Source: Utricularia gibba (Eukaryota; Plantae; Magnoliophyta). Taken from it: DNA of 64,000 bases. A program made the translations under genes and the position numbers. Location of the stretch: positions 682,001-746,000 of the forward strand of contig NEEC01000008.1 of assembly GCA_002189035.1 (NCBI GenBank). Reading direction: 5' to 3'. Of this stretch, positions 43,364 to 60,253 are shown one piece after another. The number at the start of each line of letters is the position of its first letter. The first letter of the stretch is position 1. The notes beneath the pieces were generated by a model. It saw only the letters and a program-made list of their open reading frames with translations, had not been told where the DNA came from and made no database searches.

Positions 43364-45445
43364 GCTTGAAAAAAAAAAGCCTGTTACAAAACTTGAAAAG
43401 AAACTACAGCTTCTCTCACAATATTTTACAGTCCTAGTCCTGCTGTTTCCTCTACCTCCTTTGTACTATGTTCTTCGTCTATCTCGAATTGGTTTGTCTG
43501 TTCATGTTGGTTTTGCTTACTATAGTTGGGCTCTGGTTTCTACTACAACAGGTGAACTTGATCAGCCTGACCAAGCCATATCTTTCGTCTGTTGGCTGAT
43601 TTGTTTTCGTCTTCGTTCTGGTTGCCAAAATTAATTCATATGGGGACTGGTTAGTGGGTACACGCATGATAAAATAACAAAGTCCTGGATGCAAGGTCGC
43701 TACCTTCTCATGTACAGGGCCCCTACAGCATCTGTCCAGTCATCGCCATTATTGCTGTCATTTCTGCATTTCTTCGAATACAAGAGCCGCACCTGTTTTG
43801 GGGAGATGTGGAACCAAAACCAGAACCAGAGCCAGTCGAATAGATAGTGAATAGCGACACCCCTGATGAAATCTCTCAAGCTTATTCCAGCCCATGTATT
43901 TGTCTAGAAATGATCAGATTGATGAGGATCACTACTAGCTCATGAAATCAATTTACAAAGCTAATGTTTTAGCATCAAGCACCTTAGTGACTAAGGTAAT
44001 GTCATTGTCAGTCTCGCCATAAGAAATTCTTGAGTTAATTTGTGAGGTGTTCATCTATCGCAACCAAATATGATAAATGGTTACCTTTAAAAATTTCTTT
44101 GCAAATTGATCATCCTTTTCATTTAATTATTTAATTATATATATTATACAGAATGCTATAAAATATTTAATTTATTTCATTAAGTTTTCAGATGTGTTAT
44201 GATTATAAAAGATGAATATATAATTTTTCGATTAACCAAGTAAGGGGCATTGGCATTATTAAATAATATATGTTTTAAATTGATCTAAAATCGAATAGTT
44301 ATTCGAAATAAATGTTTCAAACGTTATTATTGGGGTGCTTTTGCTAATTTTCATTTCGAAACATATGTATGTCAAAAGCTTCTAGAAGCATATTAATTTG
44401 AAAGAGTGATACAATGTGAACAAAAGAGGCCAATTTTATACATTATTTTGGAAACTCATAAATCGAAATAGTAATGTAATTTTAACATAAAAAAGAAACT
44501 AATAATGAAAGGTTCTTTTTGTAAACATTTCAATCATCATTATATTTTAAATTATTTTATTATTCATTAAAATTATGTTTATAGATTATTGTATTTTTTA
44601 ATAAAATTGAAATAACAAGTTATTCTAATACAATTTACATAATATAACAAATTTATATATTCTTATATTTTAGAGACTCAACACTCTTAGGCAGCCATTA
44701 GTTGAGGATATAAAGGAGGATTAATTAATAGGTATTAGATTTATGACTTTCTACATTTAGATGTTGCACACATTAAAATGTTTATATATAACTAAACATA
44801 TCATTTGCTTCATATAATCCTTCAAAAAAATAATTAAATGTATTCATTACTCTATAGCACACTATTGTACCTTTATGTCATCTTATAAAAAACAAAAAAT
44901 ATTGCATTGTTTAACTATTAAATATGATAAAAAAATTAACTAAGGTGAATTAATAAAAGTTCTATAAAATGACAAGTACGTTACCAGATTTAGAAGTAAT
45001 TTCTCTGATTCATTATCAATCAACAATGTATTACTTATGTTGTAACAATAATTTGACGGTTATATCATCATTTCAAATCCCTCGCAAGTTTTTAAATTTA
45101 AAGATGTTAAATCTATCGTCAATGCATGCTACTATTAGGGATGATCAATTTGGTAGGTATTGAAGCATAGATATACTAATGAATGAAAATTGGGTATCTT
45201 ATTTCATATTGTTAGATGGTATGCCTCAATTGTGAATTTCATCTCTAGTTACATGAAGTTTTAAATGTATTTAGATAACATCATTCATTCATTTCTTGAG
45301 TATAGACAAACTCATAGTCTCTTTCTCATATTTCCTGAAATTTCATTGACTTTCTATTCTTTTGGTCAAGTTTACATAGTACTTATCTTATAAGAATTGT
45401 CACACCATATAGGGATTGAGTCTCTGAAATTTGTAATCAATGGTT

Positions 45446-45903
45446 TGTTAGAGTTTGCAATAAGGTAGGATATTCGGCTATTTTGAGACAGGTTTTGAGA
45501 CTTTGAAAATATTGAACAAAGGCAGAGAAGAATATTGGTTGCTTATGCAGTTCCTTAGGGGGGTACATGAATATTTATAAGCGTAGAAACTAGTTGTTGT
45601 TGAGAACTGTTGCACCAGTCTGTCCATTACGTAGTCAGACTACTGGAATAGCAGTCAGACTGAGTGAGCCGGTGGGAGGTGCAGAGATGTTGTTGGGCAG
45701 TTGACAGCCCATCATGGTATTGGTTGGCCCAGAAGAGCAGAGTCCACTGTCTTTCCTACTTTCTGTCCAGATTGCTTCTCGGCGGGTGTTCTTTACCGCT
45801 GGGTCTCGTCTCTCGCGCGAGTTCTCAGACACTTTCTATAAATTAACAGTCGGGTATTCTCCGGTCTTTGAGCCGTCCTTCACCTCCATATCGATCACCG
45901 ACA
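45446..45903 (-). repeat. 3' LTR (458 bp)
   Basis: Plus strand TGTTAGAG...CACCGACA. Aligns to 57140-57565 plus the stub at 50560-50564. Confidence 0.93.
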
Positions 45904-45939
45904 TTCCTCCTCGATGGGTTGGTGAAGGATTGGTTGTTT

Positions 45940-48900
45940 CACTTGCAAGGTTTAATCGGAGCCCTAGAAGCTGGTGGATTCTGCAGAACGATTTGGGAAA
46001 CAGACATTTTGTGAGGATGTCTGCTGCTTGGCCTTCTAACGCTATGTACTCGCTTTATTGTGTCTTCCTGTACGTAGTCTCTTAACAAATGGTATTTGAC
46101 CTTAATGTGCTCCGTTCTTCCAAACATGACCGGCTTTTAGGCAATGCTAATTGCTGATTTGTTGTCAATTCGTAGGATTACTGGGCTGCTGATTTGTATC
46201 TTCAGGTCAACACAAAGTTTAATTAACCACTGAGTGTGGTTTGCTGCTGTTGAAGCTGCGATATATTCTACCTCCACCGACGATTGTGTGACAACATCTT
46301 GTCTTCTACTATTCCAGGCGAACAGAGCAGATCCTAAGTTGAACAGGTATCCGATCGTTGATTTGCATCCAATTTTGTCACCTGCAAAGTCTGAGTCGAC
46401 GAATCCCTGCAGAATCGGGTGAGTTCCCTTATTATAAAACAGTCCTAAATTGATAGTAGAGTTCATATATCTCAGGATTTTTCTAGCTATTTCCATGTGA
46501 ATCGTATGTGGTTTGTGCATGTATCTGGAGAGAAAGGATACTGCAAACGTGATGTCGGGTCTGGTGGCCATTAGATATAGCAAAGAACCAATGAGTTTCT
46601 AGTAGTCTTGTGTGTCAATAGGCTTTGTATCCAGATCATTCATCTTTTGTCTATCCTCAGGTGAAAATGGCACTGACGCCGCTTTTGTTTTCTCCATATT
46701 CACTCGCTTCAATAGGTCAACAGTATATTTCCTTTGATTAATAAATATCGACTCTTCATTTTGCAATATTTCAATTCCAAGGAAGTATCTTGCGAGGCCA
46801 AGAACTGTGAGATCGAACCGTTGCTTCAATAAGTCCTTTTGCTCAGAAATAAATTTTTCACTACTTCCTGTGATCAATATGTCGTCGACATAGAGTGTAA
46901 TAACGATCTTTCCTTTTGAGTTTTCCAATATATATAAAGTGGTGTCGTTCTTGCTTCGGTAGTACCTTGATCTAGGAAGAATTTGTCGATGGTAGAGTAC
47001 CACCCTTTCGGCGCCTATTTGAGGCCATATAGGGTCTTATTTAGTTTTAAGACATACTCAAGGTGGTCTTGAATTAGAAATCCGGGGGGGGGGTGTCTTC
47101 ACATATATGTCTTCGTTCAGATCTCCATTAAGAAATGCACTCTTGATGTCTAAGTGGTGAAGTTTCCATCTATTGCAGGGGACAAGGCTATTATGAGCTT
47201 GACGGTGTCTAGTCTGGCAACAGGCATAAACGTCTTCAGGTAATCTATTCCGGCTTTTTGGAGGTAGTCCTTTACTACCAGTCTGGCTTTGAGTTTGTTG
47301 AGTATCCCATCGGAGTTTAGTTTGGTCTTGAAAATCCACTTCAATTCCAAGGGTCTTGTATTCTTTGGCTTAGGGACGGCCACCCATACTTCGTGATCAT
47401 GTATGGATTTCAGTTCGGCATCCATGGTGCTTCTCCACTCAGGATATTTCAAGGCTTCAGTCACGCTGTTGGGTTCATGCACCAATAAGCAGCGATCTAA
47501 AATATTTTGGACTGAGCGATAGCCCCTTCTAGGAGGCTCATCTTCACGTTCGCGGGGACTAGTGTAGAGGTGATAAGCCAAGTAGGGCAGGTCTTCATGG
47601 CTTATCCCATAATCTTCTAGATAATTGTATTTTCAGATTCGGGAAGTAATATGGGGTTTCTGATGGCTTAGGGCGGACACCTCAACAAGAGAGCGTCTTC
47701 ATGTTGGTTCAGGGCTCCGTCCAAAGTTTCGAAATCGGAGTCAGTACTGTGGGTAGGCTGCACAGGTATATTGTCTGAGCCTCCTTCTTCAGCATATGAA
47801 AGCGTGACTTCAGGTGTGGATTTTACAGAATCTGAAAACTGTCGACATGTTTCTTCTGCATTTGAGGTTTGGGTAGAAATTTCCAGTCTTGGTGTCGATT
47901 CTAATTCTATTGTGAGGGGGCTGTGTTTCATGATAAGGATCAAGGCCTAAGTCTTGATTAAGAATTCCTCCTGAGTCCTGATTAAGAATTCCTCCTGAGT
48001 CGGATAACATATATACTTGTTGTTGACTCACTTCGTTTGTCGAGTTGTCTTCTTCAGAAATTTCTATCTGCTGTACGGTATGCGGTCCTTGACTTGTTTG
48101 GTCAAGAGAGTCATTTCCAAGACCAGATATAAGTTCCACAGAAGGAAATAGGTTACGAATACCACTGGATAAGCTGGGAGATTCTCATTGGGTAACAGAA
48201 TGTTTTTCCAGTCCCAGGTTTTGTCTTCCTCCACTATGACATCACGGCTGATTTCTACTGCATTCTTTCACAGGTTTAGCACTCGGTACGCTTTACGTGT
48301 ATCGGCATATCCCAAAAAATACCAGGTTCGGATCTGTTATCCAGTTTCGTTCGCTTTTCCTTGGGAATGTAGATATAGCATGGAGAGCCAAAGACTTTAA
48401 TATGATCTAACACTGGGATCTTACCGTGCCAGAGCTCATAAGGGGTCTTGTTGTTCTCGATGCCTTTTGTAGGAAGGTGATTCAAGAGGTATACTGTTGT
48501 GTTTACTGCTTCTCCCCAAAACTCCTTAGGTAACCCCTTTTGGTGTAGCAGACATCGAGCCATATTGATTATGGTTTGATTTTTCCTTTCGCATATTCCG
48601 TTTTGCTCCGATGAGTAGGAGGCTGTAAATTGATGGACAATGCCATTGCTTTCACATAATCTCTTCAGCTCAGTGGATTTATATTCTCCTCCATTGTCTT
48701 ATCTGAGAGTGAGAATTTTGCAGTTGCTCTGAGTTTCTGCAAGAGACTTGAAGATGTTGAAATAGTGCAGCACTTCGGCCTTTCGTTTTAGTAGATAAAT
48801 CCAGGTATATTTTGAATATTCATCCACAAAAATAACATAGTATTTGTTTCCTGCCCTTGTAGGTGTAGCCATCGGGCCCCAGACGTCACTGGTTACAACC

Positions 48901-50476
48901 TCAAGTTTCTCCTTCGAATGAGAGCTGAATTCTGGGAAGGGTTTTCTGTTCATTTTGCATTCGATACAGGTCGGGCACTTTCCGTCTTCTGGACTCAACT
49001 CAGGTAGGCTTTCGCGAGATTCTGCCTTTTCAAAGTTAAAAGGGATGCATAGTGGTGATGTCCTAGTCTCTCATGCCACAGTTTGGTTTTTTCGATTGTC
49101 ACCAGACATACATCTTCAATGAGAGTAGGCATAGAGAGTGTCAAATGAAAGATTATGTTAATCATTTCGCCTATGAGTATTATATTGTTTGCTTCATCTC
49201 TTATAATACACCTGTTGAGTTCCAGGTGAACCTTATATCCTTTTTCCACCAACTGTCCTGTGCTCAATAAGTTATGAGATATGTTTGGTACCAGATACAC
49301 ATCCAAGATTTTGATCAGTCTGTGTGCAGTTTCTATGCACACGGTTCCCACACCCTCAACAGGTAGCTGCTTTCCATCTGAAATCTCAATAAATTTATTT
49401 GAGAGCTTTGAGATGTGCAAGAATATACTTTTTTCGTTTGTAAGGTGGCGATTGCAGCCACTGTCAACCAACCATACCACCCGTTTTCGGAGATCAGTGA
49501 AGGAGGTAATTAGGGTGTGTTGATACTCGAGATAAAGGTCGACTTTCCTCTTATTAACTTCAGCGTTGAAGGATACATCATTGAAAGAATTAACTAGTTT
49601 TTCCATAGGATCGTCGGACATCCCCACAAGCTGATGATATTTCTTGAGTGGATAGACCTGGTCGACATGGCCTTTGAGCGAACAGTAGGAGCAGCTGACA
49701 TCCGGATTTGAGAAGCATTTGGAGGGTGAGTGTCCTTTCCGCTTGCAATAAGGGCAGAGACCGTTTTGAGGAATCTTCTCAGGTTTGGCTTGAATAAACA
49801 CAGGAGGTTGAGAGGTTTCGGCACATGGCTCCTTCTTGGGAAGTCGAGACTCATGAGCATGAAAGGCAAGTTCTGAGGCGTGCAGTTGATCAGCAGCATA
49901 AGGTTTGATTTCCACCCCTTTTAACCCCTAGAGGAGTTGTTTAGAGCTCATGGAATGGATGCGGCCATCAAACTTATGGAGCCAACACATACTCGAATTG
50001 TTGCAGTACAAGGCTGATTATTTTTGCACATAGGCGACTGTCTTCGATCTTCTCACTCAAGCGTTCTAGACCTGAAACAATTTTTGTTAGTTCTTCTGAA
50101 AAACTAGCAATGGACTAACCTGGATGGATCTCGAGCATCTCGTATTGTTTCCACATGTGAGACTTCTCAATAGCTGCAATTTGTATATCTCGACCATATA
50201 TTGAAGCAAGGGTGTCCCAAGTCTGCTTAGGGGAGGTGCAGTTCATTATGGGATCGTAAGTGTTCCCAGGTATTGCTCCACCTAAGATTGCTTGAGCTTG
50301 ATCTGCTTTTTCGTCCCAGGCTGTCTTTTCATCTTATGTTTTTCCTGAGTATTCTGTTGATACAACTGCCCATAGCTTGCATGCACGTAAATAAAGGGTC
50401 ATTTTGTTTGCTCAGCGTTCATATTCACTGCCGGTGAATGTTGGTGCAGGTTGATTGAAGTTAGAGGCCATGGCAT
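45940..50476 (-). pseudogene. Copia gag-pol, fragmented
   Basis: CPYCKRKGHSPSKC, WLVDSGCNRH, LWHERLGH, SDVWGP, FWGEAVNT..YLLN, KWIFKTK..KARLV, LYVDDILITGS, YLMATRPDI, IDNKSAISIA. Confidence 0.93.
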
Positions 50477-50541
50477 CTTCTTGAGAGGAGTGATTGATGC
50501 TTTGAGATTCTGAACAGAAGGTTTTGTGGGAGGACTACGAC

Positions 50542-50559
50542 TTCACGTCGAGTTCATCA
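50542..50559 (-). other. Primer binding site resembling the tRNA-Trp 3' end
   Basis: Minus strand TGATGAACTCGACGTGAA directly after the LTR end. It matches TGGTGAACCCGACGTGAA (complement of plant tRNA-Trp as recalled) at 16/18. Confidence 0.65.
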
Positions 50560-50564
50560 TGTTA

Positions 50565-52455
50565 GGGCGCGTTTGCTTGTTGGGTTTTGCCTAAACCCAG
50601 ATTTAGTTTATTTGGGTTTAGGGAACCCGGTTTTGTGGGTTTAGTCTCTGTGAATCATTTTTTGTTGATGGGTTTACATTATTTGGGTTTAAATAAACCC
50701 ACGTTTGCTTGGTGGGTATAAAATTGGGTTTATACATAATTTTCATGGGAATTTACTAATATAGCCTTTCACACTCGTGCACCGACTTTCACACCCACTT
50801 TACCCATTCAGACATATTCCTCTTTCTTACCATTACCCCCTTCGTCCAACGACTTTCACAGTCCATTGTCGCGGTGCTGCCGGTCGACGAGATCTCTCGT
50901 TTTCACAAGTAATTGAGAGTGAAGAGCCATGGGTTACGTCCAGTTTGTATACTCCCTTCGTTGCACAGGGTTTCTTGTTTAAAATCCGTTGAATTTTGAG
51001 TGAATTTTACGGTTTACTTGTGGTAAGTGTTCGGTGTAGATGCTTTGTTCTTGCTGTTTTATTTCCTCCAGCACAGATTGCAAATATGCATAGCCCAAAC
51101 GTGATGGAAGAGTCTCACAAAAAAACGAAACGCGCCTGGAAGCCAGATGAGGAGAAAGACTTGTTGCACGCTTTGAAGCAGATCGTGAAAAAAGGTTGGA
51201 AAATTGAGAATGGTTTCAGGTGTGGGTATCACCGAGCGTTAGAGACAGAGTTTTTGAAACTCCTACCTAGAACCGACATCCGCGCACACCCCCATATATC
51301 TAGCAAGGTGCACACCTGGAAAAAAGACTACTACCTCCTTGTAGATTTTTTATCACGATCAGACACCGGTTTCAGTGAGCTGACCTACACCGTAGACGCA
51401 GACAATGAGGTTTGGAAGGAGATTGATCAGGTATGTATGCTCTGTTGTTGTTGTGTTATATCCGGTGCTGACCGTGTTATTATGTCAGCATGCACCCAGA
51501 CTGCGTGCCCTAAGACACAAGGCGTGGCCGTATTACATGGAGTGGCAGGAAATCTTTGGAAAGGATCGGGTTACAGGAGAAAAAATGAAGAGCTATGTAG
51601 CCGCGATCAAGAAGAGGAAATTCATGGAAGATGTGGGGGAGAATCTGGAAGTATCTTCGGATTGCCCTCTGGACCCGGATAGCACTGGACACGATATGAA
51701 CTTCTCGTATGCTGACACACCTTGTGACCCAATTGGTTGTGCTGCGGAGGGTTTCAACATCACGCCTAGTAGGGACTCTGAATCACACAACAGCACCAAC
51801 TCGTCGCGGCGCACTGGACGAAGCGGCAGGGGACCGAGGGGAATTGATGATGATGTGCAGTTTATCACAGAAATCAAGGAGCTTAACATGCGCACATGCG
51901 AAGAGCTACGTCACTTGGGATTAACAGTGGTGCAGCAAGCGCGGGACTTGATGGATAATCAGCGTCAGGCAGGGGAGATCATTAGAGGTATGCCGGTGCA
52001 ATTAACTGCCATCGAACGTTTTACCATAGCAGAGACGATTAGTTCCAACCCTGCGAGGTTGCGCTATTTCCTTGCCTCTAGCGACTGTGAGAGAGAGCTA
52101 ATTGTGCGTGGTTTAGTATCCGAATGTTGATCTTAAATCTGTTGTGTGGTGCTCCGCCTTATGTTGGAGTCATGGACTAGATGTATTTCGTCTTCTAATT
52201 ATCTTTTAAACTGATATGAGCACTGCAAAGGGTAGACAGTGTTCTAACTTCGTATGTGGAAGCACCGCATAATAGCAATCGCGGTGCTTCGTTGTTGAGC
52301 ACTCATCCGCAAACGTGGTGCTGCAACTATGGGTAAATTCATAGCAGTGCTATCGAGTAGTGATGGACTAGCACCGCGTTGGTTTTGCGTATTACGAAGC
52401 ACCACGTCTAGACACAAGGTTTCAAATCCATAGATGGCACCGGATGTTACAACAT
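50565..52455 (+). repeat. Left inverted arm
   Basis: Reverse-complement homology to 55301-57139 from the TIR to ...GGCACCGGATGTT(AC/G)AACAT, with scattered substitutions and indels. Confidence 0.9.
51086..52130 (+). CDS. Harbinger Myb/SANT-like DNA-binding protein, intact (328 aa, 2 exons)
   Basis: Exons 51086-51430 and 51489-52130, 58-nt GT-AG intron, phase 0, no stops. Motifs RAWKPDEEKDLL..GWKIENGFRCGY, PHISSKVHTWKKDY, WPYYMEWQEIFGKDRVTG. Confidence 0.88.
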
Positions 52456-52551
52456 GCGGTGCCACCGCGAATAGTGATCGATTAAAAACTAACAAGGTCA
52501 GCATACGATAGTTCACGCAAGATCCATGCAATTGCAAAGGTGCGCCGTCGA

Positions 52552-53621
52552 TTAGACAAGAGCCTTGTAATGCTTCCACAATGGGTGTTCCTCATCTATT
52601 GGACGTTGACCTACCCGACGTCGATTGACGTACGTGGGTACATCCATGTTGTCAATGAGGGCTTTCAGGAACGACCTAATATCTCCCCTCGAACCAGCGA
52701 ACAATCATTCGCCGCGGTGTACTTGAATGTGGTTGGGAATATGGCATTTTCGGGCTGTTCAGTGAAAGTAAACAATCATCGGATGCAAGACGGTGGAGAA
52801 TGAGCGCTACCGAAAACTCACCGGATTGTGTAGTGACTTGTATGGCGCATCATCGATGAGAAGCATATTAACACGGTGATATTTGCCCTTGAACTCGGTG
52901 TTGGCGCCCATACATGATTCAACAGCTTAAGCTTAACCGTGTTGTTCCTGTTGTCGTGCATCGGATAGCCAGTGTCCACACACCTGGATCCATCCCATTG
53001 GAAGACGAGCTTGCTAGCTACTGCAGTCCCTAGTAACCACTGAATCACATCGTGCAATTGTTCACTGTCACACGTCGTCAGAAAAAAAAAATGTCAGTAG
53101 GAATGCGGACCCCCTTGTCTGCTAGGTGGTCAGTCTTACCGCCCTCTTGAAGACCAGATAGCGAGGTCAAAGTGTTCCATGCAAAATTGTATCAACTCAC
53201 ATGCACCTGGTCGAAGATACACTACAACCACAAGAAATAGTACTGACACATGAACCAAATATTAAATGCATATCAATGACATTGCATTACCGTTTCGCCC
53301 GTAAATGACGGCATCCGGCTTTGGCGCTCCCCATATGACTTCGCGAGGATACACAATGTCCGCAAGTACGCCATTCATGTCAAATATAAGCAACTTCCGT
53401 GGTGGGGCCGTGTTATCACTAGACAGTCCACCATATGGCCACCTTGCTTCATACCATGCAAGCCGACCACAAAGATCAAGATTCTCTGCGTACAGTCTCT
53501 CCACTTCGATATATTTTGCAGTGACAACACCACACCCGTCATCGTGAGTCCAGATCGGTGTTGGCGTGTCCGTGTTGCCCCTGACTTCTGGCTGCACATC
53601 TTCTTGCTCTTCATGGGTCAT
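52552..53621 (-). CDS. FCP1-homology / NIF (HAD-family) phosphatase-like gene, 4 exons, two 1-nt deficits as written
   Basis: Exons 53291-53621, 53140-53221, 52822-53064, 52552-52754 with GT-AG introns of 69, 75 and 67 nt. Motifs RKLLIFDMNGVLADIV, VYLRPGACELIQFCMEHFDLAIWSSR, KLVFQWD, NMLLIDDAPYKSLHNP, GGDIRSFL, GQRPI..HPLW. Confidence 0.8.
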
Positions 53622-54760
53622 CTCCTCAGGATCATCATTTGTACTCGTACGTTATCGACGGTGTCGAGGGGTTCCGCACCACAAATGTTGTGTCCTAGGG
53701 GCATTGACGAAGGGGGGCAAGACGTCCTCCAAGGACTTTGTTCTGCAAGAGAACAAATTCACGAACCTCCTTGCCGCACGTTTTGGCAACACCTCTATAC
53801 CTACAATGAAAACAGCAACAAACATGAGTACGGTTGCACAAGATGTGTGCAACACCGAAATTATTCTGTATGGTTACCTGATGGATGTCCTACATTCTCT
53901 AACACTGTCAACGTTGTTGGCCATTCTGCAGCGGTGGGTGGGCATACCCATACAAAACTGGTCCATCAATCATCATATGCACTTCTCACGTCTGTAACCA
54001 GAATCACACCATGTTTTCCATGAAGCGAGTAGTGTGGATCATTGGAGCCAACACCACGATCTTCAGTTGAGGTGCTTCCACATAGGCTTGTACGACACCA
54101 ACGTTGTGGGCAGCACCATGTGTTTCATCGTATCCGGTGCTCATAAAATTGAAGATTAGATGAGTGTGAAGCTGGTGCATAGTAGTGAGGGTATTTGGTA
54201 CTACAGCAAAGCGTCATTTGACCGAACACCGCGATCCGTAAACTCCGGTGCTTCTGTACGCTTGGGCTATGCTGCGTTCAGTGCTGCACCGAATGTTTCC
54301 TCGTATCCAGTGCTGTCAAATCTTAGAAGTAGATGTGTACGCAGCTCGTACATGTTAGCATGGGTGATTGGTAGTACAATAATACTCCATTTGACCAAAC
54401 ACCGCGATCCGTAATATGCGATGTTTCCAAATACCTGAGGTATGCTACACATTCCACAGCATCGCGAAAACCTAATCCGATGTTCTGAGTTCCAAAAACA
54501 AAATGCCATAAGATATTGCAGTTATCCAGCATTAAATGCGAAGGGCGGTTGACAACCGCCCAGCGCTATTAATACCCCCCTGCGCACAATAAAGACGCCT
54601 GACATTGTGCACTTTCCAAAATAACTTCATTAATTCTGCCATCCAACTCCACCCTTTCAGCAAACATGCAACAACACCACGAAAACAGTCTCCTCGGCAA
54701 CCTCTCTAGAACAGCGTCGCGACGGTAGACACCTTTGCCCTTTGCATTTCAAATTCTTCG

Positions 54761-55249
54761 TTGCCATTGTCGAGTAACACGTCTATTGTTTTCCAGATGT
54801 TGACATGTGAGAAACTACGTGTCCGCTTCTCAATTCCCGACGGTTACACGATGTGGGATAAACAGTCGGGCGAAACGTCGGACGGCGAACCACCATCCAG
54901 AGTTGGCGGTTCGGGATTCGCCGTCAGCACCGAGCACTTTCGGTGTGGATTGCGACTCCCCCCACCCCCTTTCTTAGTGCAAATACTTGCTGCACTTCAG
55001 ATCCCACTCTCCCACCTAACACCGCGTTATGTGGCACACGTTCTCGCATTTTTGCAGATCTGTGAAGAGGAGGACATAACCCCGGAAATGCATGTCTTCT
55101 TTGTGGTTTCTATTTGTGTCCAACGCAAGGGGGGTCCGCACTACTCGCTTCATGGAAAACCTGGTGTGGTACTGGTTATAGACGTGAGAAGCGCATATGA
55201 TGATTGGTGGACCAGTTTTGTATGGGTATGCCCACCCACCGCTGCATAA
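54761..55249 (+). CDS. Transposase_28 (PF04195, putative Gypsy-type transposon)-like ORF
   Basis: 162-aa open frame with LRVRFSIP, EHFRCGLRLP.PPFL..IL...IPLSHLTP...VLAF..IC, WWTSFVWV, resembling the antisense accessory domain of Tat/Athila-type Gypsy elements. Confidence 0.65.
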   Translation: MPLSSNTSIVFQMLTCEKLRVRFSIPDGYTMWDKQSGETSDGEPPSRVGGSGFAVSTEHFRCGLRLPPPPFLVQILAALQIPLSHLTPRYVAHVLAFLQICEEEDITPEMHVFFVVSICVQRKGGPHYSLHGKPGVVLVIDVRSAYDDWWTSFVWVCPPTAA

Positions 55250-55300
55250 TGGCCAACAACGTTGACAGTGTCAGAAAATGTGGGACACCCATGTCAGAGG

Positions 55301-57139
55301 ATGTTCAACATCCGGTGCCGTCTCTGGATATGAAACCTTGTGTCTAGACATGGTGCTTCGTAATATGCAGCACCAACACGGTGCTAGTCCATCACTTCTC
55401 GATAGCACCGCTGTGAATGTGGCGGTAGTTGCAGTACAATGTTTGCAAAAAAGTGCTCAAGAACGAAGCACCGCGCTTGTTCATACGCGGTGCTTCCACA
55501 TACGAAGTCAGAACACTGTCTACCCTTTGCAGTGCTCATACCAGTTTAAAGGAGGAAAAGAAGATGAAATACATCTAGTCCATAAGTCTAACATAAGGCG
55601 GAGCACCACACAACAGATTTAAGATCTACGTTCTGATGCTAAACCACGCACAATAAGCTCTCTTTCACAGTCACTGGAGGCAAGGAAGTAGCGCAACCTC
55701 GCAGGGTTGGAACTAATTGTCTCTGCTACGGTAAAACGTTCGATGGCAGTTAATTGCACCGACATATCTCTAATGATTTCACAGTCACCAACTCCCGCGC
55801 TTGCTGCACTACTGTTAATCCCAAGTGACATAGCTCTTCGCATGTGCGCACGTTAAGCTCCTTCATTTCTTTGATGAACTGCACATCATCGTCGATTCCC
55901 CTCGGTCCCCTGCCTCTTCGTCTAGTCCGCCGCGACGAGTCGGTGCTATTGTGTGGCTCGGAGTCCCTACTAGGTGTGACGTTCACACCCTCCACAGCGC
56001 AACCAATTGGGTCACAAGGTGTGTCAGCATACGAGAAGTTCATATCGTGTCCAGTGCTATCCGGGTCCAGAGGGCAATCCGAAGATACTTCCAGATTCTC
56101 CCCAACATCTTCCATGAATTTTCTCTTCCTGGTCCCGTGAACATAGCTCATTGTTTTTTCTCCATGTAATACGGCCACGCCTTGTGTCTTAGGGCGCGCA
56201 GTCTGGGTGCATGCTGACATAATAACACGGTCAGCACCGGATATAACACAGCGACAACAAGGCATATGTACCTGATCAATCTCCTTCCAAACCTCATCAT
56301 CTGCGTCTACGGTGTAGGTCAGCTCACTGAAACCGGTGCCCGACCTAGATAAAAAATCTACAAGGAGGTAGTAGTCTTTTTTCTAGGTATGCACCTTGCT
56401 AGATATATGCGGGTGTGCGCGAATGTCGGTTCTAGGGCGGAGTTTCAAGAACTCTGTCTCTAACGCTCAGTGATACCCACCCCTAAAACCATTCTCAATT
56501 TTCCAACCTTCTTTCACTATCTGCTTCAAAGCATGCAACAAGTCTTTCTCCTCGTCTGGCTTCTAGGCGCGTTTCGTTTTCTTGTGAGACTCTTCCACCA
56601 CGATTGGGCTGTGCATACCTGCAATCTGTGATAGAGGAAAGAAAAAAGCAAGAACAAAGCACCTACACCGAGCACTTACCACAAGTAAACCGTAAAATTC
56701 ACTCAAAATTCAACGGATTTCAAACGACAAACTCTGCGCAACGAAGAGAGTATACAAACTAGACTTAACCCATAGCTCTTCACTCTCAGTTACTTGTGAA
56801 ATCGAGAGATCTCGTCAACCGACAGCACCAAGACAACCGAGTGTGAAAGTCGGTGGACAAATTGGGAAAACTAGGTAATAAAGAGGAATATGTCTGATTG
56901 GTTAAGTCGGTGTGGAAGGCGGTGGACGAGTGTAAAAGGCTATATTGGTAAATTCTCATGAAAATTATGTATAAACCGAATTTTATACCCACCAACCAAA
57001 CGTGGGTTCATTTAAACCCAAATAATGTAAACCCATCAACCAAACATGATTTCTAAACCCTAAACCCACGAAACCGGGTTCCCTAAACCCAAATAAACTA
57101 AACCTGGGTTTAGGCCAAACTCAGCAACCAAACGCGCCC
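55301..57139 (-). repeat. Right inverted arm
   Basis: Reverse complement of 50565-52455. Confidence 0.9.
55619..56616 (-). pseudogene. Second Myb/SANT gene copy, inactivated
   Basis: Homologous to 51086-52130 but with premature stops at 56563-56565 (TGG>TAG), 56467-56469 (CGA>TGA) and 56383-56385 (TGG>TAG), plus a deletion near 56160 removing WQEIFGKDRVTG. Confidence 0.88.
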
Positions 57140-57565
57140 TTAGAGTTTGCAATAAGGTAGGATATTTGGCTGTTTTGAGACAGGTTTTGAGACTTTGAAA
57201 ATATTGAACAAAGGCAGAGAAGAATATTGGTTGCTTATGCAGTTACTTAGGGGGGGTACATGAATATTTGTAAGCGGAGAAACTAGTCGTTGTTGAAAAC
57301 TGTTGCACCAGTCTGTCCGTTACGTAGCCAGGCTACTAGAACAGTGGTCAGACTGAGTGGGCCGCTAGGAGTTGACAGCCCATCATGGTATTGGTTGGCC
57401 CAGAAGAGCAGAGTCCACTGTCTTTCCTACTTTCTGTCCAGATTGCTTCTTGGCGGGTGTTCTTCATAGCTGGGTCTTGTCTCTCGCGCAAGTTCTTAGA
57501 CACTTTCTCAGTCGGGTATTCTCCGGTCTTTGAGCCATCCTTCACCTCCATATCGATCACTGACA
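57140..57565 (-). repeat. 5' LTR of the Copia (bulk; its terminal TGTTA is displaced to 50560-50564)
   Basis: Aligns to 45448-45903 with substitutions and one internal deletion of about 22 bp. Confidence 0.93.
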
Positions 57566-58049
57566 TGGTTTAATATCTACTCATTGCATGTCTTTCACTA
57601 CTACTAATGTTCCAAAACACCCTTTGTCATCTTCATCTAAGGGTTGCACACCACACAATATAACAATTTCAGTCAAAAATATCAAAAATTATGCAAATCA
57701 AAAGATATTTATAAAGGAAATACTAGTTAGTCTTCCAATATTTGATAAGTTCAATATGTATCTAACTATTATAAACATTACATCTTCTAGCAAAGTGAAC
57801 CATTTGAAATTAATTCATCAATCTCTATAAAAGTCTCATAAATTTATCGCCATGATAATTCCACCATTCAATGATATTGAAAAATAATGTCTCAAGACAA
57901 CTTTTGAGCACTTTTCAATGTCAAACAATGTATCAATACTAAGTATAAACTTGTCATTTTAGCATAACTTAATAAAAATCAACAATATTATTGATGAGAC
58001 ACAATATTAAATAAAATAGTGGAACATGCAACAAATGAAACGCCAACTG

Positions 58050-58200
58050 AATTAAAGATTGAATTGTAATTTCAATCCACATTTAAAATGCTCTGTATTT
58101 ATATTAAAAGCATGGGAGCCAATATTGTGTGGTTCATCAGAAATTTTCTCACCATCTTTATTGTTTGATATTACACATTTTTTGGGGCCAAATTTGTGAA
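58050..58200 (-). pseudogene. Decayed relic of the same Transposase_28-like domain
   Basis: DGEKISDEPHNIGSHAFNINTEHFKCGLKL aligns with GETSDGEPPSRVGGSGFAVSTEHFRCGLRL of ORF 54761-55249. Confidence 0.5.
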
Positions 58201-60253
58201 GAAATTGTGTCAGAAGAATTAGATTTGTAAAGTAACTGGGTTTTAGATTAGCAATGTTTACAAAAATATTTGCAATATAGCTTAACATTCTAAATATATT
58301 GATTTGATATTGCTTTTCGAAATATTAATTAATTATAAATATTATTTATAATATTTAAATGAATTAAAATATTAAAAATATAGTTTATAAAATATTTTGC
58401 ATCATATTATATTTTAAATTAATATAATATTTTAATATATCAGTCGAATGCATAATATATCATTAATATAATATTTTAATAATTTTTTGATAATATTATT
58501 ATAAAAAATCACAATCCAATGTAATAAAATATACCATTTTAATATATAAAATATACACATAAAATTGTGTATGTTCTTAGTTATTTTACAAATAAAATTA
58601 AAAACCTCAGTTACTTTGAAAATATCATATTCAAATTAGTTACTTCGCCAACAATATTTACTGACATTAGTCATTTTCCCAATTTACTCCATTTTTTGAC
58701 ATCAGTCTATTTGTTTGATTTTATTTGCAATAATCATCAATTGTAATGAATGTTACAAATAAAATAGAACATAACAATATACATAAAATCAGTTATTAAT
58801 CAAAAAAATGTGAAAAAAATTGGAAAATAGTTGATAATGTAAAAAATGTAAACTAACTTTAAACAAAATCATTGGTTTTAAAAAATAAAAATATATTATA
58901 CTAATTTAATAAATTGATAATAAAAATTAAAGAAATTGTTATTAATCAATTCAAAAAGTCACAGAATATTTTTTTATATTTTAATATAAAAAATTAGGTA
59001 AAAATTTCGAAAAATTTGAAAAAAATTCTGTAAATTTTAAGGTCATCACCCTTAGTTGGTACTTCCATTTAAACTTGATCTACAAAAATATCAAATTTCA
59101 TTTATACATAAATTGGATTGAAAGTAGTCTTAATTGGAAATAATACTCAGACCTAGCATACAACTGAAGAAAAACTCTGAAAATTGAAATATTATTTAGA
59201 TTGCAGATTGTCTTGAGTTTATATTATAGACTAAAATTATTTATTCTAGTAAAGAATTTAATGGCATGATACAACTGAAACTTCGAATGCATAGTAGTAG
59301 TGATTCACACAATGAAACCAGTTAAATCTATCTATTTATTTGCAATAACTAAGACCAACTTTGGAATAAATAAAAAGAATGAAGCTGCATGATTGCAAAA
59401 TTTGTAAAAAGACAATATATTTATAAGGTAACAAAGCACAAATGTTGTGTCAACTCATCTAATGTATTGGTGTATGACTTAAGGTGCAAATAGGATCAAC
59501 ATATATTTTGTATTCAATCCATTTTTACTTTATGTAAAATTAATAATATATTGATTTTTAAATGATTATAGTGATTTAAAAATATTTTATAATGCAAATA
59601 ATGTAAATTTAATAATATATTGTTTATCTCTAATATGTAAATGCAAATAATGTAAATATATTATTAATTCTATGTGTTTATCTTTGCATACCCTTCCCAT
59701 TTTTTTTCTTTTTAAAATTTACTATCATTTATATTATAAATTAAGTAATGATTTTTAAAAACAGGGATGCCAAATTAGTGAATCTGCTAGGCAGTGATGC
59801 TCTAATCACTGGCCTGGGGTCATCTCTGTGCTGTCTAGGGACAGTTTCTTGCGAATCGCCCAATTTGATGGCTTCCCTGGGTCGGTGAATCTTGGATGCC
59901 GTTTCGTATTGGTTTTTCTCCCCCTCGGAGGCCCGGTTGATTTTTGTTGCCTCCGTTGGTTTCCCCTCCAATTTCAGTGCCTCTGTCGGCTGCCCGGCTC
60001 TTCCACAGGTGGGGTTGGGGTTTGGTTCGCGTTTTAATATGCTTGCCGGTGATTGATTCCTGATTTCCTCTTTGGTTGTTTGAATCACTTTGTAATCTAA
60101 GCCTTTGTGTATGGTCGATTAGTGGAATTTCGAGGGGCTTTCGTTGTAACTAATTCGGTGGTTCGCGCGTGATACTTACTTCCCTTGATTTATTGCATCA
60201 TGATACCCTGAAACTCTATGCAGATTGTAAACTGATGGTGAGTAACTGAAAAG

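Follow-up and report, generated by a model that had tools for sequence, protein, structure and literature searches.

Positions 50565–57139 of a 64,000-nt stretch of the Utricularia gibba genome (assembly GCA_002189035.1, contig NEEC01000008.1, positions 682,001–746,000 of the forward strand; the whole stretch is called the window throughout) carry a 6.6-kb element, in which two inverted arms enclose a spacer. We consider it likely that this element, which is referred to here as the composite, is a single-copy, decayed and non-autonomous derivative of an abundant PIF/Harbinger family. Both of its ends are the Myb-side end of the family, joined head to head in an element without transposase, and the entire 6.6 kb is explained by two Myb-side halves. 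An earlier interpretation of the same DNA (the original prediction) had suggested a foldback-like element of the Pack type, in which two copies of one end enclose foreign genes. Our data indicate that the composite is an ordinary rearranged derivative of its family and not a novel class of mobile element. The meaning of this result is mainly corrective: what looked like a new architecture with captured genes appears to be a one-off chimera of a family that already carried these genes. The composite and its borders consist of the following parts (strand in brackets).

50562–50564: left TTA target-site duplication (TSD), which together with the preceding TG (50560–50561) restores the start of the host long terminal repeat (LTR), TGTTAGAG
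50565–52448 (+): left arm with the terminal inverted repeat (TIR) GGGCGCGTTTG, subterminal GGGTTTA motifs, Myb gene and 3' intergenic region
51086–52130 (+): left Myb/SANT gene, open (exon 1, 51086–51430; 58-nt intron, 51431–51488; exon 2, 51489–52130)
52449–53880 (−): segment present in the left half only, with the linker and the putative multi-exon phosphatase-like 3' part of the third gene; TAA at 53652–53654
53881–54038 (−): Transposase_28-like exon, left copy of its 3' end, cut off at 54038; TGA at 53966–53968
54034–54038: head-to-head fusion junction with the 5-bp microhomology GTGGA, single-copy in the reads
54039–55134 (+): segment present in the right half only, with the upstream region, the Transposase_28-like 5' part and a diverged 173-bp tandem duplication
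54761–55249 (+): Transposase_28-like open reading frame (ORF) of the right half (PF04195), ended by GAA>TAA relative to the left half
55135–55292 (+): Transposase_28-like exon, right copy of its 3' end (92.4% identity with 54038–53881)
55293–55306: filler at the 1432-bp deletion that removed the phosphatase-like part (equivalent of 52449–53880)
55307–57139 (−): right arm, inverted counterpart of the left arm
55628–56616 (−): right Myb pseudogene with three premature stops and deletions of 37 bp and 16 bp
57140–57142: right TTA TSD

A repeat finder and a gapped self-comparison aligned the two arms over 1887 columns with 87.2% identity when the 57 gap columns were included. For the ungapped columns, the identity was 89.9% (112 transitions, 72 transversions), which corresponds to a Kimura two-parameter (K2P) distance of 0.109 ± 0.008. 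Altogether, 184 substitutions and four indels separate the arms, and losses of the CpG type are evenly shared between them (16 vs. 19). The gapped self-comparison detected no further copies of the element in the window. Both arms open with GGGCGCGTTTG, and each is flanked by TTA (50562–50564 and 57140–57142). PIF/Harbinger TIRs have been defined as inverted repeats of about 14–25 bp with a G(N)5GTT motif (PMC2213677), and a TIR of this kind, GGGCGCGTT(TG), was found at both ends; the exact 11-mer GGGCGCGTT occurs within the window only at these two places. The 3-bp TTA/TAA TSD of the superfamily is present at both flanks, and its Myb/SANT gene (ORF1) is found in each arm. In the left copy, exon 1 matches Pfam Myb_DNA-bind_3 (PF12776) above the gathering score (E 2.7e-7). 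The DDE transposase domain (IS5-like) of an autonomous member was not detected by Pfam in any of the ten ORFs tested. Two inverted Myb-bearing arms that start from TTA-flanked TIRs, and the lack of a transposase, had both been predicted, and the self-comparison places the arms within a few bases of the predicted limits. The subterminal regions 50592–50732 and 57013–57112 are dense in GGGTTTA/TAAACCC and hold 13 of the 20 occurrences in the window. This motif is similar to the plant telomere repeat TTTAGGG, and its subterminal copies are candidate binding sites for the Myb-like protein of the element.

The spacer (52449–55306) measures 2858 bp and not 2845 bp as originally given, and the two outward-facing ORFs predicted for it are indeed present (53621–53262, minus strand; 54761–55249, plus strand). 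In addition, it contains an inner inverted pair (53881–54038 and 55135–55292; 92.4% identity), which is located 14 bp from the right arm and 1432 bp from the left arm. Thus, the palindrome extends inward beyond the arms and its halves differ by a 1.43-kb indel. In the minus-strand translation of the left half, a Transposase_28-like exon is represented by its 3' end and is followed by a splice donor, then by a linker and finally by several exons with FCP1/NIF-like motifs. The right ORF represents the same Transposase_28-like exon with its 5' part intact (PF04195, E 8.9e-10), and the arm follows directly after it. Comparison of the two halves indicates that the spacer ORFs are the 3' (phosphatase-like) and the 5' (Transposase_28-like) parts of one gene, which lies tail to tail (convergent) with the Myb gene in each half.

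This third gene belongs to the family. When we summed the contig depth in four sequencing runs, we found values of 50–1500 over the whole element including the spacer, as compared with 3–19 in the flank. Since the spacer lies in the same range of depth as the arms, it is as repeated as they are, which makes it family DNA. Where family contigs match the left half as far as 54034–54038, they go on with the reverse complement of 55105–55138, and such contigs across the breakpoint indicate that in ordinary copies the gene continues as in the right half. In support of the 1432-bp deletion in the right half, a family contig connects 55319 with 52473. Both in-frame stops of the left half are specific to this copy: at 53966–53968, where the left half has TGA, most family contigs read TGG, and at 53652–53654 some of them read CAA (A>G at 53654) instead of TAA. 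These data confirm the family status of the third gene and its position beside the Myb gene, a position that it occupies in two separately evolving family lineages. The foreign cargo of the original prediction is therefore high-copy family DNA, and its ORFs are two ends of the family's own gene, one part per half. The Pack-type assignment falls with it, because captured host genes were not found; the spacer is as high-copy as the arms, and the gene is in the same position in both halves.

The phosphatase-like (FCP1/NIF-like) label of the 3' part is a putative one, derived from our reading of the motifs LLIFDMNGVL and LLIDD. Pfam did not call an NIF/FCP1 domain on the two single-exon pieces tested, and a PDB search returned none. 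In the HAD/FCP1-type motif (53370–53390, minus strand), F-D-M-N-G is found at the place of the catalytic DxDx(T/V), so that the second aspartate is an asparagine. Either a private G>A change or a pseudo-enzyme trait shared by the whole family may account for this. The linker just upstream of this motif (53388–53510, minus strand) resembles a chromodomain with its aromatic positions aligned (PDB 1g6z, Clr4; E 0.038), a likeness too weak to be claimed. Short motifs containing GGTGCT/AGCACC are clustered on either side of the third gene (54062–54480, 52244–52450 and 55310–55505); among them are a diverged 173-bp tandem duplication (54102–54254 and 54275–54427, 71%) and a 23-nt direct repeat (54062–54084 and 55480–55502).

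The two halves meet at one asymmetric junction (54038/54039), which is real and single-copy within the reach of our data. The left half ends here within the Transposase_28-like exon and the right half reaches 1.1 kb further; no TIR relic was found at this inner junction. For analysis of the reads, contigs were placed at 85% likeness on positions 53935–54145. At 54036, the sole contig from run X1 was the exact one, and its depth of 12.1 is that of the flank (9–13), whereas in runs X3 and X5 no contig covered this position at 85% likeness. Contigs from X6, a run of a different study, bridge 53980–54068 and 53988–54048 with G>A changes of a bisulfite-like pattern. More generally, X6 contigs (50385–50467, 53980–54068) differ from the window nearly only by C>T or G>A, and this run probably represents bisulfite-converted DNA, from which the methylation of the locus might be read. 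In contrast to the exact contig, three, three and eight family contigs (X1, X3 and X5, respectively) begin to match at 54034 and are preceded by ...GGTAACATGGTAACACACG, which is not in the element. Family contigs break on both sides of the junction, and the canonical sequences overlap in GTGGA (54034–54038). A single-copy junction gives no sign of a foldback or Pack-type family, and the arm–spacer–arm layout in several copies with TSDs of their own that defines foldback or long-TIR families was not seen in the short contigs of the four runs. The mobile family envisaged in the original prediction thus finds no counterpart in the reads.

The composite is inserted into an LTR retrotransposon. The right flank has a paralogue at 45446–45903, and this paralogue is the other LTR of a complete Ty1/copia element on the minus strand (45441–57570). 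Its direct LTRs (TG..CA) are 93.9% identical, its gag, protease, integrase and reverse transcriptase ORFs are decayed, and a purine tract adjoins the 3' LTR. In minus-strand order the domains are Pol_BBD/gag_pre-integrs, rve, SH3_retrovirus and RVT_2, and the 5-bp TSD TGGTT is found at 45441–45445 and 57566–57570. Thus, the LTR pair, the 5-bp TSD and the domain order are those of Ty1/copia elements. This host had been overlooked in the original prediction, as had the inner inverted pair and the relation between the two ORFs.

45446–45903 (−): host 3' LTR, preceded on the plus strand by the TSD TGGTT (45441–45445)
45904–50559 (−): host internal region with gag/protease, integrase and RVT_2
57140–57565 (−): host 5' LTR; its last two bases lie beyond the composite at 50560–50561, and the TSD TGGTT (57566–57570) follows on the plus strand

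The composite sits in the TTA at bases 3–5 of the copia LTR, the start of which reads TGTTAGAG. This start is rebuilt when the flanks on the left (TG-TTA) and on the right (TTA-GAG) are put together and, apart from the duplicated TTA, no host base was lost or gained. The paralogous LTR provides the empty site (TG-TTA-GAG). The TTA duplication is genuine and the flanks are exactly contiguous. We did not accept the TSD alone as proof of a unit insertion, because Harbingers nearly always duplicate TTA or TAA; the LTR-based empty site is the stronger argument. For the host, the composite puts 6.6 kb between the 5' LTR and the primer-binding region, which alone would disable the retrotransposon. 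Outside the copia element, an AT-rich block (57800–59500; G+C content 18–30%) carries a stop-ridden Transposase_28-like similarity (57800–58186, minus strand; tblastn, 23% identity, E 3e-6), which presumably stems from another decayed element.

To date the divergence of the arms, their Myb genes and the host LTRs are informative. The left Myb gene is uninterrupted (115 + 213 codons across a 58-nt GT..AG intron), and the right copy is disabled by two TGG>TAG changes, one CGA>TGA change and the deletions of 37 bp and 16 bp. The two genes differ by 39 synonymous and 35 nonsynonymous substitutions, with 19/16/43 differences at the three codon positions, and the ratio of nonsynonymous to synonymous divergence (dN/dS) was 0.22. 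When the observed substitution types were redistributed with the CpG context kept, 22 ± 3.9 synonymous differences were expected, and a value of 39 was reached in none of 5000 runs. These data suggest that the divergence of the arms was mostly built up while both lineages encoded a working protein under purifying selection. If so, it predates the joining into a transposase-less element with a dead right gene. Moreover, the K2P distance between the arms (0.109 ± 0.008) exceeds that between the host LTRs (0.064 ± 0.013). Since the composite cannot be older at this site than the copia element, the arms should already have been diverged on arrival. Taken together, the signature of purifying selection and the excess of arm over LTR divergence indicate that the arms derive from two different, already diverged family members and not, as originally proposed, from two copies of the same end. 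In the left Myb gene there is no disabling change, in its right partner there are five, and such a distribution would arise under equal neutral decay with a chance of roughly 5%. Many of the differences between the left Myb gene and the family majority are private, and this gene may stem from a minor, recently functional sublineage.

From these observations, the following origin can be proposed. The Myb-side halves of two diverged family members would have been joined head to head at 54038/54039 via the 5-bp microhomology, and both transposase-side halves would have been lost in this process. Before or after the joining, the right half would have lost its phosphatase-like part by the 1.43-kb deletion. 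The junction suggests microhomology-mediated joining or template switching, and it may have been reached by abortive gap repair or, if two neighbouring inverted copies had undergone alternative or macro-transposition, by deletion of the palindrome centre. We consider it plausible, with about an even chance, that the composite was formed elsewhere and reached this TTA as a unit, with family proteins using its two equivalent ends for cut-and-paste transposition. For instance, neighbouring inverted copies might have moved by their outer ends as a macrotransposon, with the centre of the palindrome being deleted afterwards. A unique junction is compatible with unit insertion because cut-and-paste keeps the copy number at one. 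The composite may have been mobilised in trans as a unit.

Formation in place is a serious competitor, although we rate it somewhat short of an even chance. It might have proceeded along two routes, which we consider jointly. According to the first one, an ordinary full-length copy resided at this TTA and had its transposase half replaced during abortive gap repair, with another family copy being taken as the template from the shared TIR onwards. According to the second one, an inverted copy entered the duplicated TTA beside a first copy, which created a long palindrome whose centre was then removed by microhomology-mediated joining. The asymmetric junction with its 5-bp microhomology and the two sources of the arms are in line with these routes, and abortive gap repair, inversions and nested insertions are documented to generate Harbinger derivatives (PMC2213677). 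On the other hand, formation in place needs either a template switch to an ectopic copy that is about 10% diverged or two hits in one 3-bp site, and the sequence holds nothing that separates it from unit insertion. In favour of formation in place, maize PIF reinserts repeatedly at one site, and the occupied site CCC-TTA-GAG still resembles the reported PIF target, a 9-bp consensus.

The remaining explanations fare much worse. Duplication of one Myb-side end in inverted orientation, with captured host genes replacing the transposase half, would give a foldback-like family of the Pack type mobilised in trans. Such an origin accounts for the two Myb-side ends, the contiguous flanks with their TTA TSD and the missing transposase. 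Nevertheless, it is very unlikely, given that the supposed cargo is high-copy family sequence arranged in the same way in both halves, that the dN/dS of the arms is 0.22, that the divergence of the arms exceeds that of the host LTRs and that the fusion junction is single-copy. Palindromes are also a known class of artefact, but a chimeric palindrome resulting from long-read or assembly errors is highly improbable here. The 184 substitutions and four indels between the arms follow a biological pattern, and exact X1 contigs of single-copy depth cover 53733–53921 and 53936–54063, with X6 bridging 53980–54068. The original prediction had argued against a chimeric-read palindrome, and the arm divergence of 10–13% together with the exact single-copy-depth contigs across the inner junction bears this out. 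Two insertions at nearby separate sites with an intervening deletion, or an inversion by recombination between inverted copies, would agree with two-sourced arms and with the fact that Harbingers always target TTA/TAA, so that matching flanks prove little, but the LTR start TG-TTA-GAG is split without loss, and both LTRs and the TGGTT TSD of the copia element are still in place. This exact contiguity excludes such events for all practical purposes.

Several points weigh against a single-copy composite with two sources. At eight of the 17 listed sites, both arms agree with each other against the family majority, which suggests that the sources were not very distant. The dN/dS argument presumes that there was no later gene conversion from other copies, and the comparison of arms and LTRs presumes equal mutation rates, although inverted repeats may be methylated and deaminated faster. 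As to the reads, the Logan contigs are short (60–190 nt in the repeat, none spanning an arm) and their depth is not copy number. Run X1 may be the source sample of the assembly, and siblings that are more than 15% diverged or absent from the runs are undetectable in this way. Finally, no full-length family member was recovered, so that a transposase gene beyond the third gene is presumed for the family. A word-index protein search with Myb exon 2 and the Myb-domain ORF as queries gave no match at E <= 0.001. With the Transposase_28-like ORF as query, an exhaustive HMMER search produced 45 hits; the top one was only 33% identical, and a phosphatase domain was present in none of the ten checked.

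It may be speculated that the composite has served as, or still is, a "Harbinger killer", which silences the whole Harbinger family in trans, but we regard this as unlikely. The composite lies within the copia 5' LTR, 2 bp from its inner end, and an LTR-driven or read-through transcript would cross both arms. Its folding would give a hairpin with a stem of about 1.9 kb that contains the TIR, the subterminal sites and the Myb gene, and this hairpin could feed small interfering RNAs. The scenario parallels the action of Mu killer on MuDR and that of Ac composite insertions on Ac. No RNA runs holding this stretch were listed. Such same-end derivatives are candidates for triggering the silencing of transposons, and if the locus were to yield small RNAs, the trigger mechanism would extend to a third superfamily.

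The closest known architecture is that of Mu killer (Muk), a rearranged MuDR element of maize, in which both termini come from the same end and partial gene copies are arranged head to head (PMC3440606). The composite shares these properties: it is internally deleted, its TIRs come from one element end, it carries two partial copies of the adjacent gene region in an inverted duplication and it is found at a single locus. Unlike the composite, Muk belongs to the Mutator superfamily, and the gene that it duplicates is that of the transposase (mudrA) and not, as here, the Myb/DNA-binding gene. Silencing of MuDR by Muk has been demonstrated genetically, whereas a silencing role of the composite is speculative, and the arms of the composite are about 10% diverged and come from two sources. 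Alternative transposition of Ac/Ds elements also yields inverted duplications of transposon sequence (bioRxiv 10.1101/2020.01.07.897926). There, as proposed here, the termini of two nearby elements are engaged and fractured transposon pieces end up in inverted duplications, but these composites belong to the hAT superfamily and were observed as they formed, with re-replication, whereas our mechanism is reconstructed from an old product. With these precedents in two other superfamilies, the layout cannot be called undescribed as in the original prediction, although we found no paper that describes a same-end head-to-head layout in PIF/Harbinger.

Within the superfamily, the MtPH derivatives of Medicago (PMC2213677) and the C. 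inopinata derivatives that retain only MADF, the DNA-binding gene (PMC13668399), resemble the composite in their G(N)5GTT TIR, TTA TSD, loss of the DDE gene, retention of the DNA-binding gene and origin by gap repair or rearrangement. They carry one copy of each end, whereas here the same end is present twice, with two Myb genes, and no multiplication was seen. Kilobase-scale inverted arms also bound Drosophila Foldback and Galileo (PMC3688188), but in these elements long TIRs with repeated transposase-binding sites are a family-wide property, in contrast to a one-off fusion of gene-bearing halves. With Pack-MULE and Pack-TIR elements (PMC8277862), the composite shares TIR borders, the lack of a transposase and internal coding sequence, which in those elements consists of captured host gene fragments and here of the family's own genes. 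Taken together, the composite provides a clean and datable PIF/Harbinger case, with an exact empty site and a microhomology junction, of the head-to-head same-end derivatives known from Mutator and Ac/Ds.

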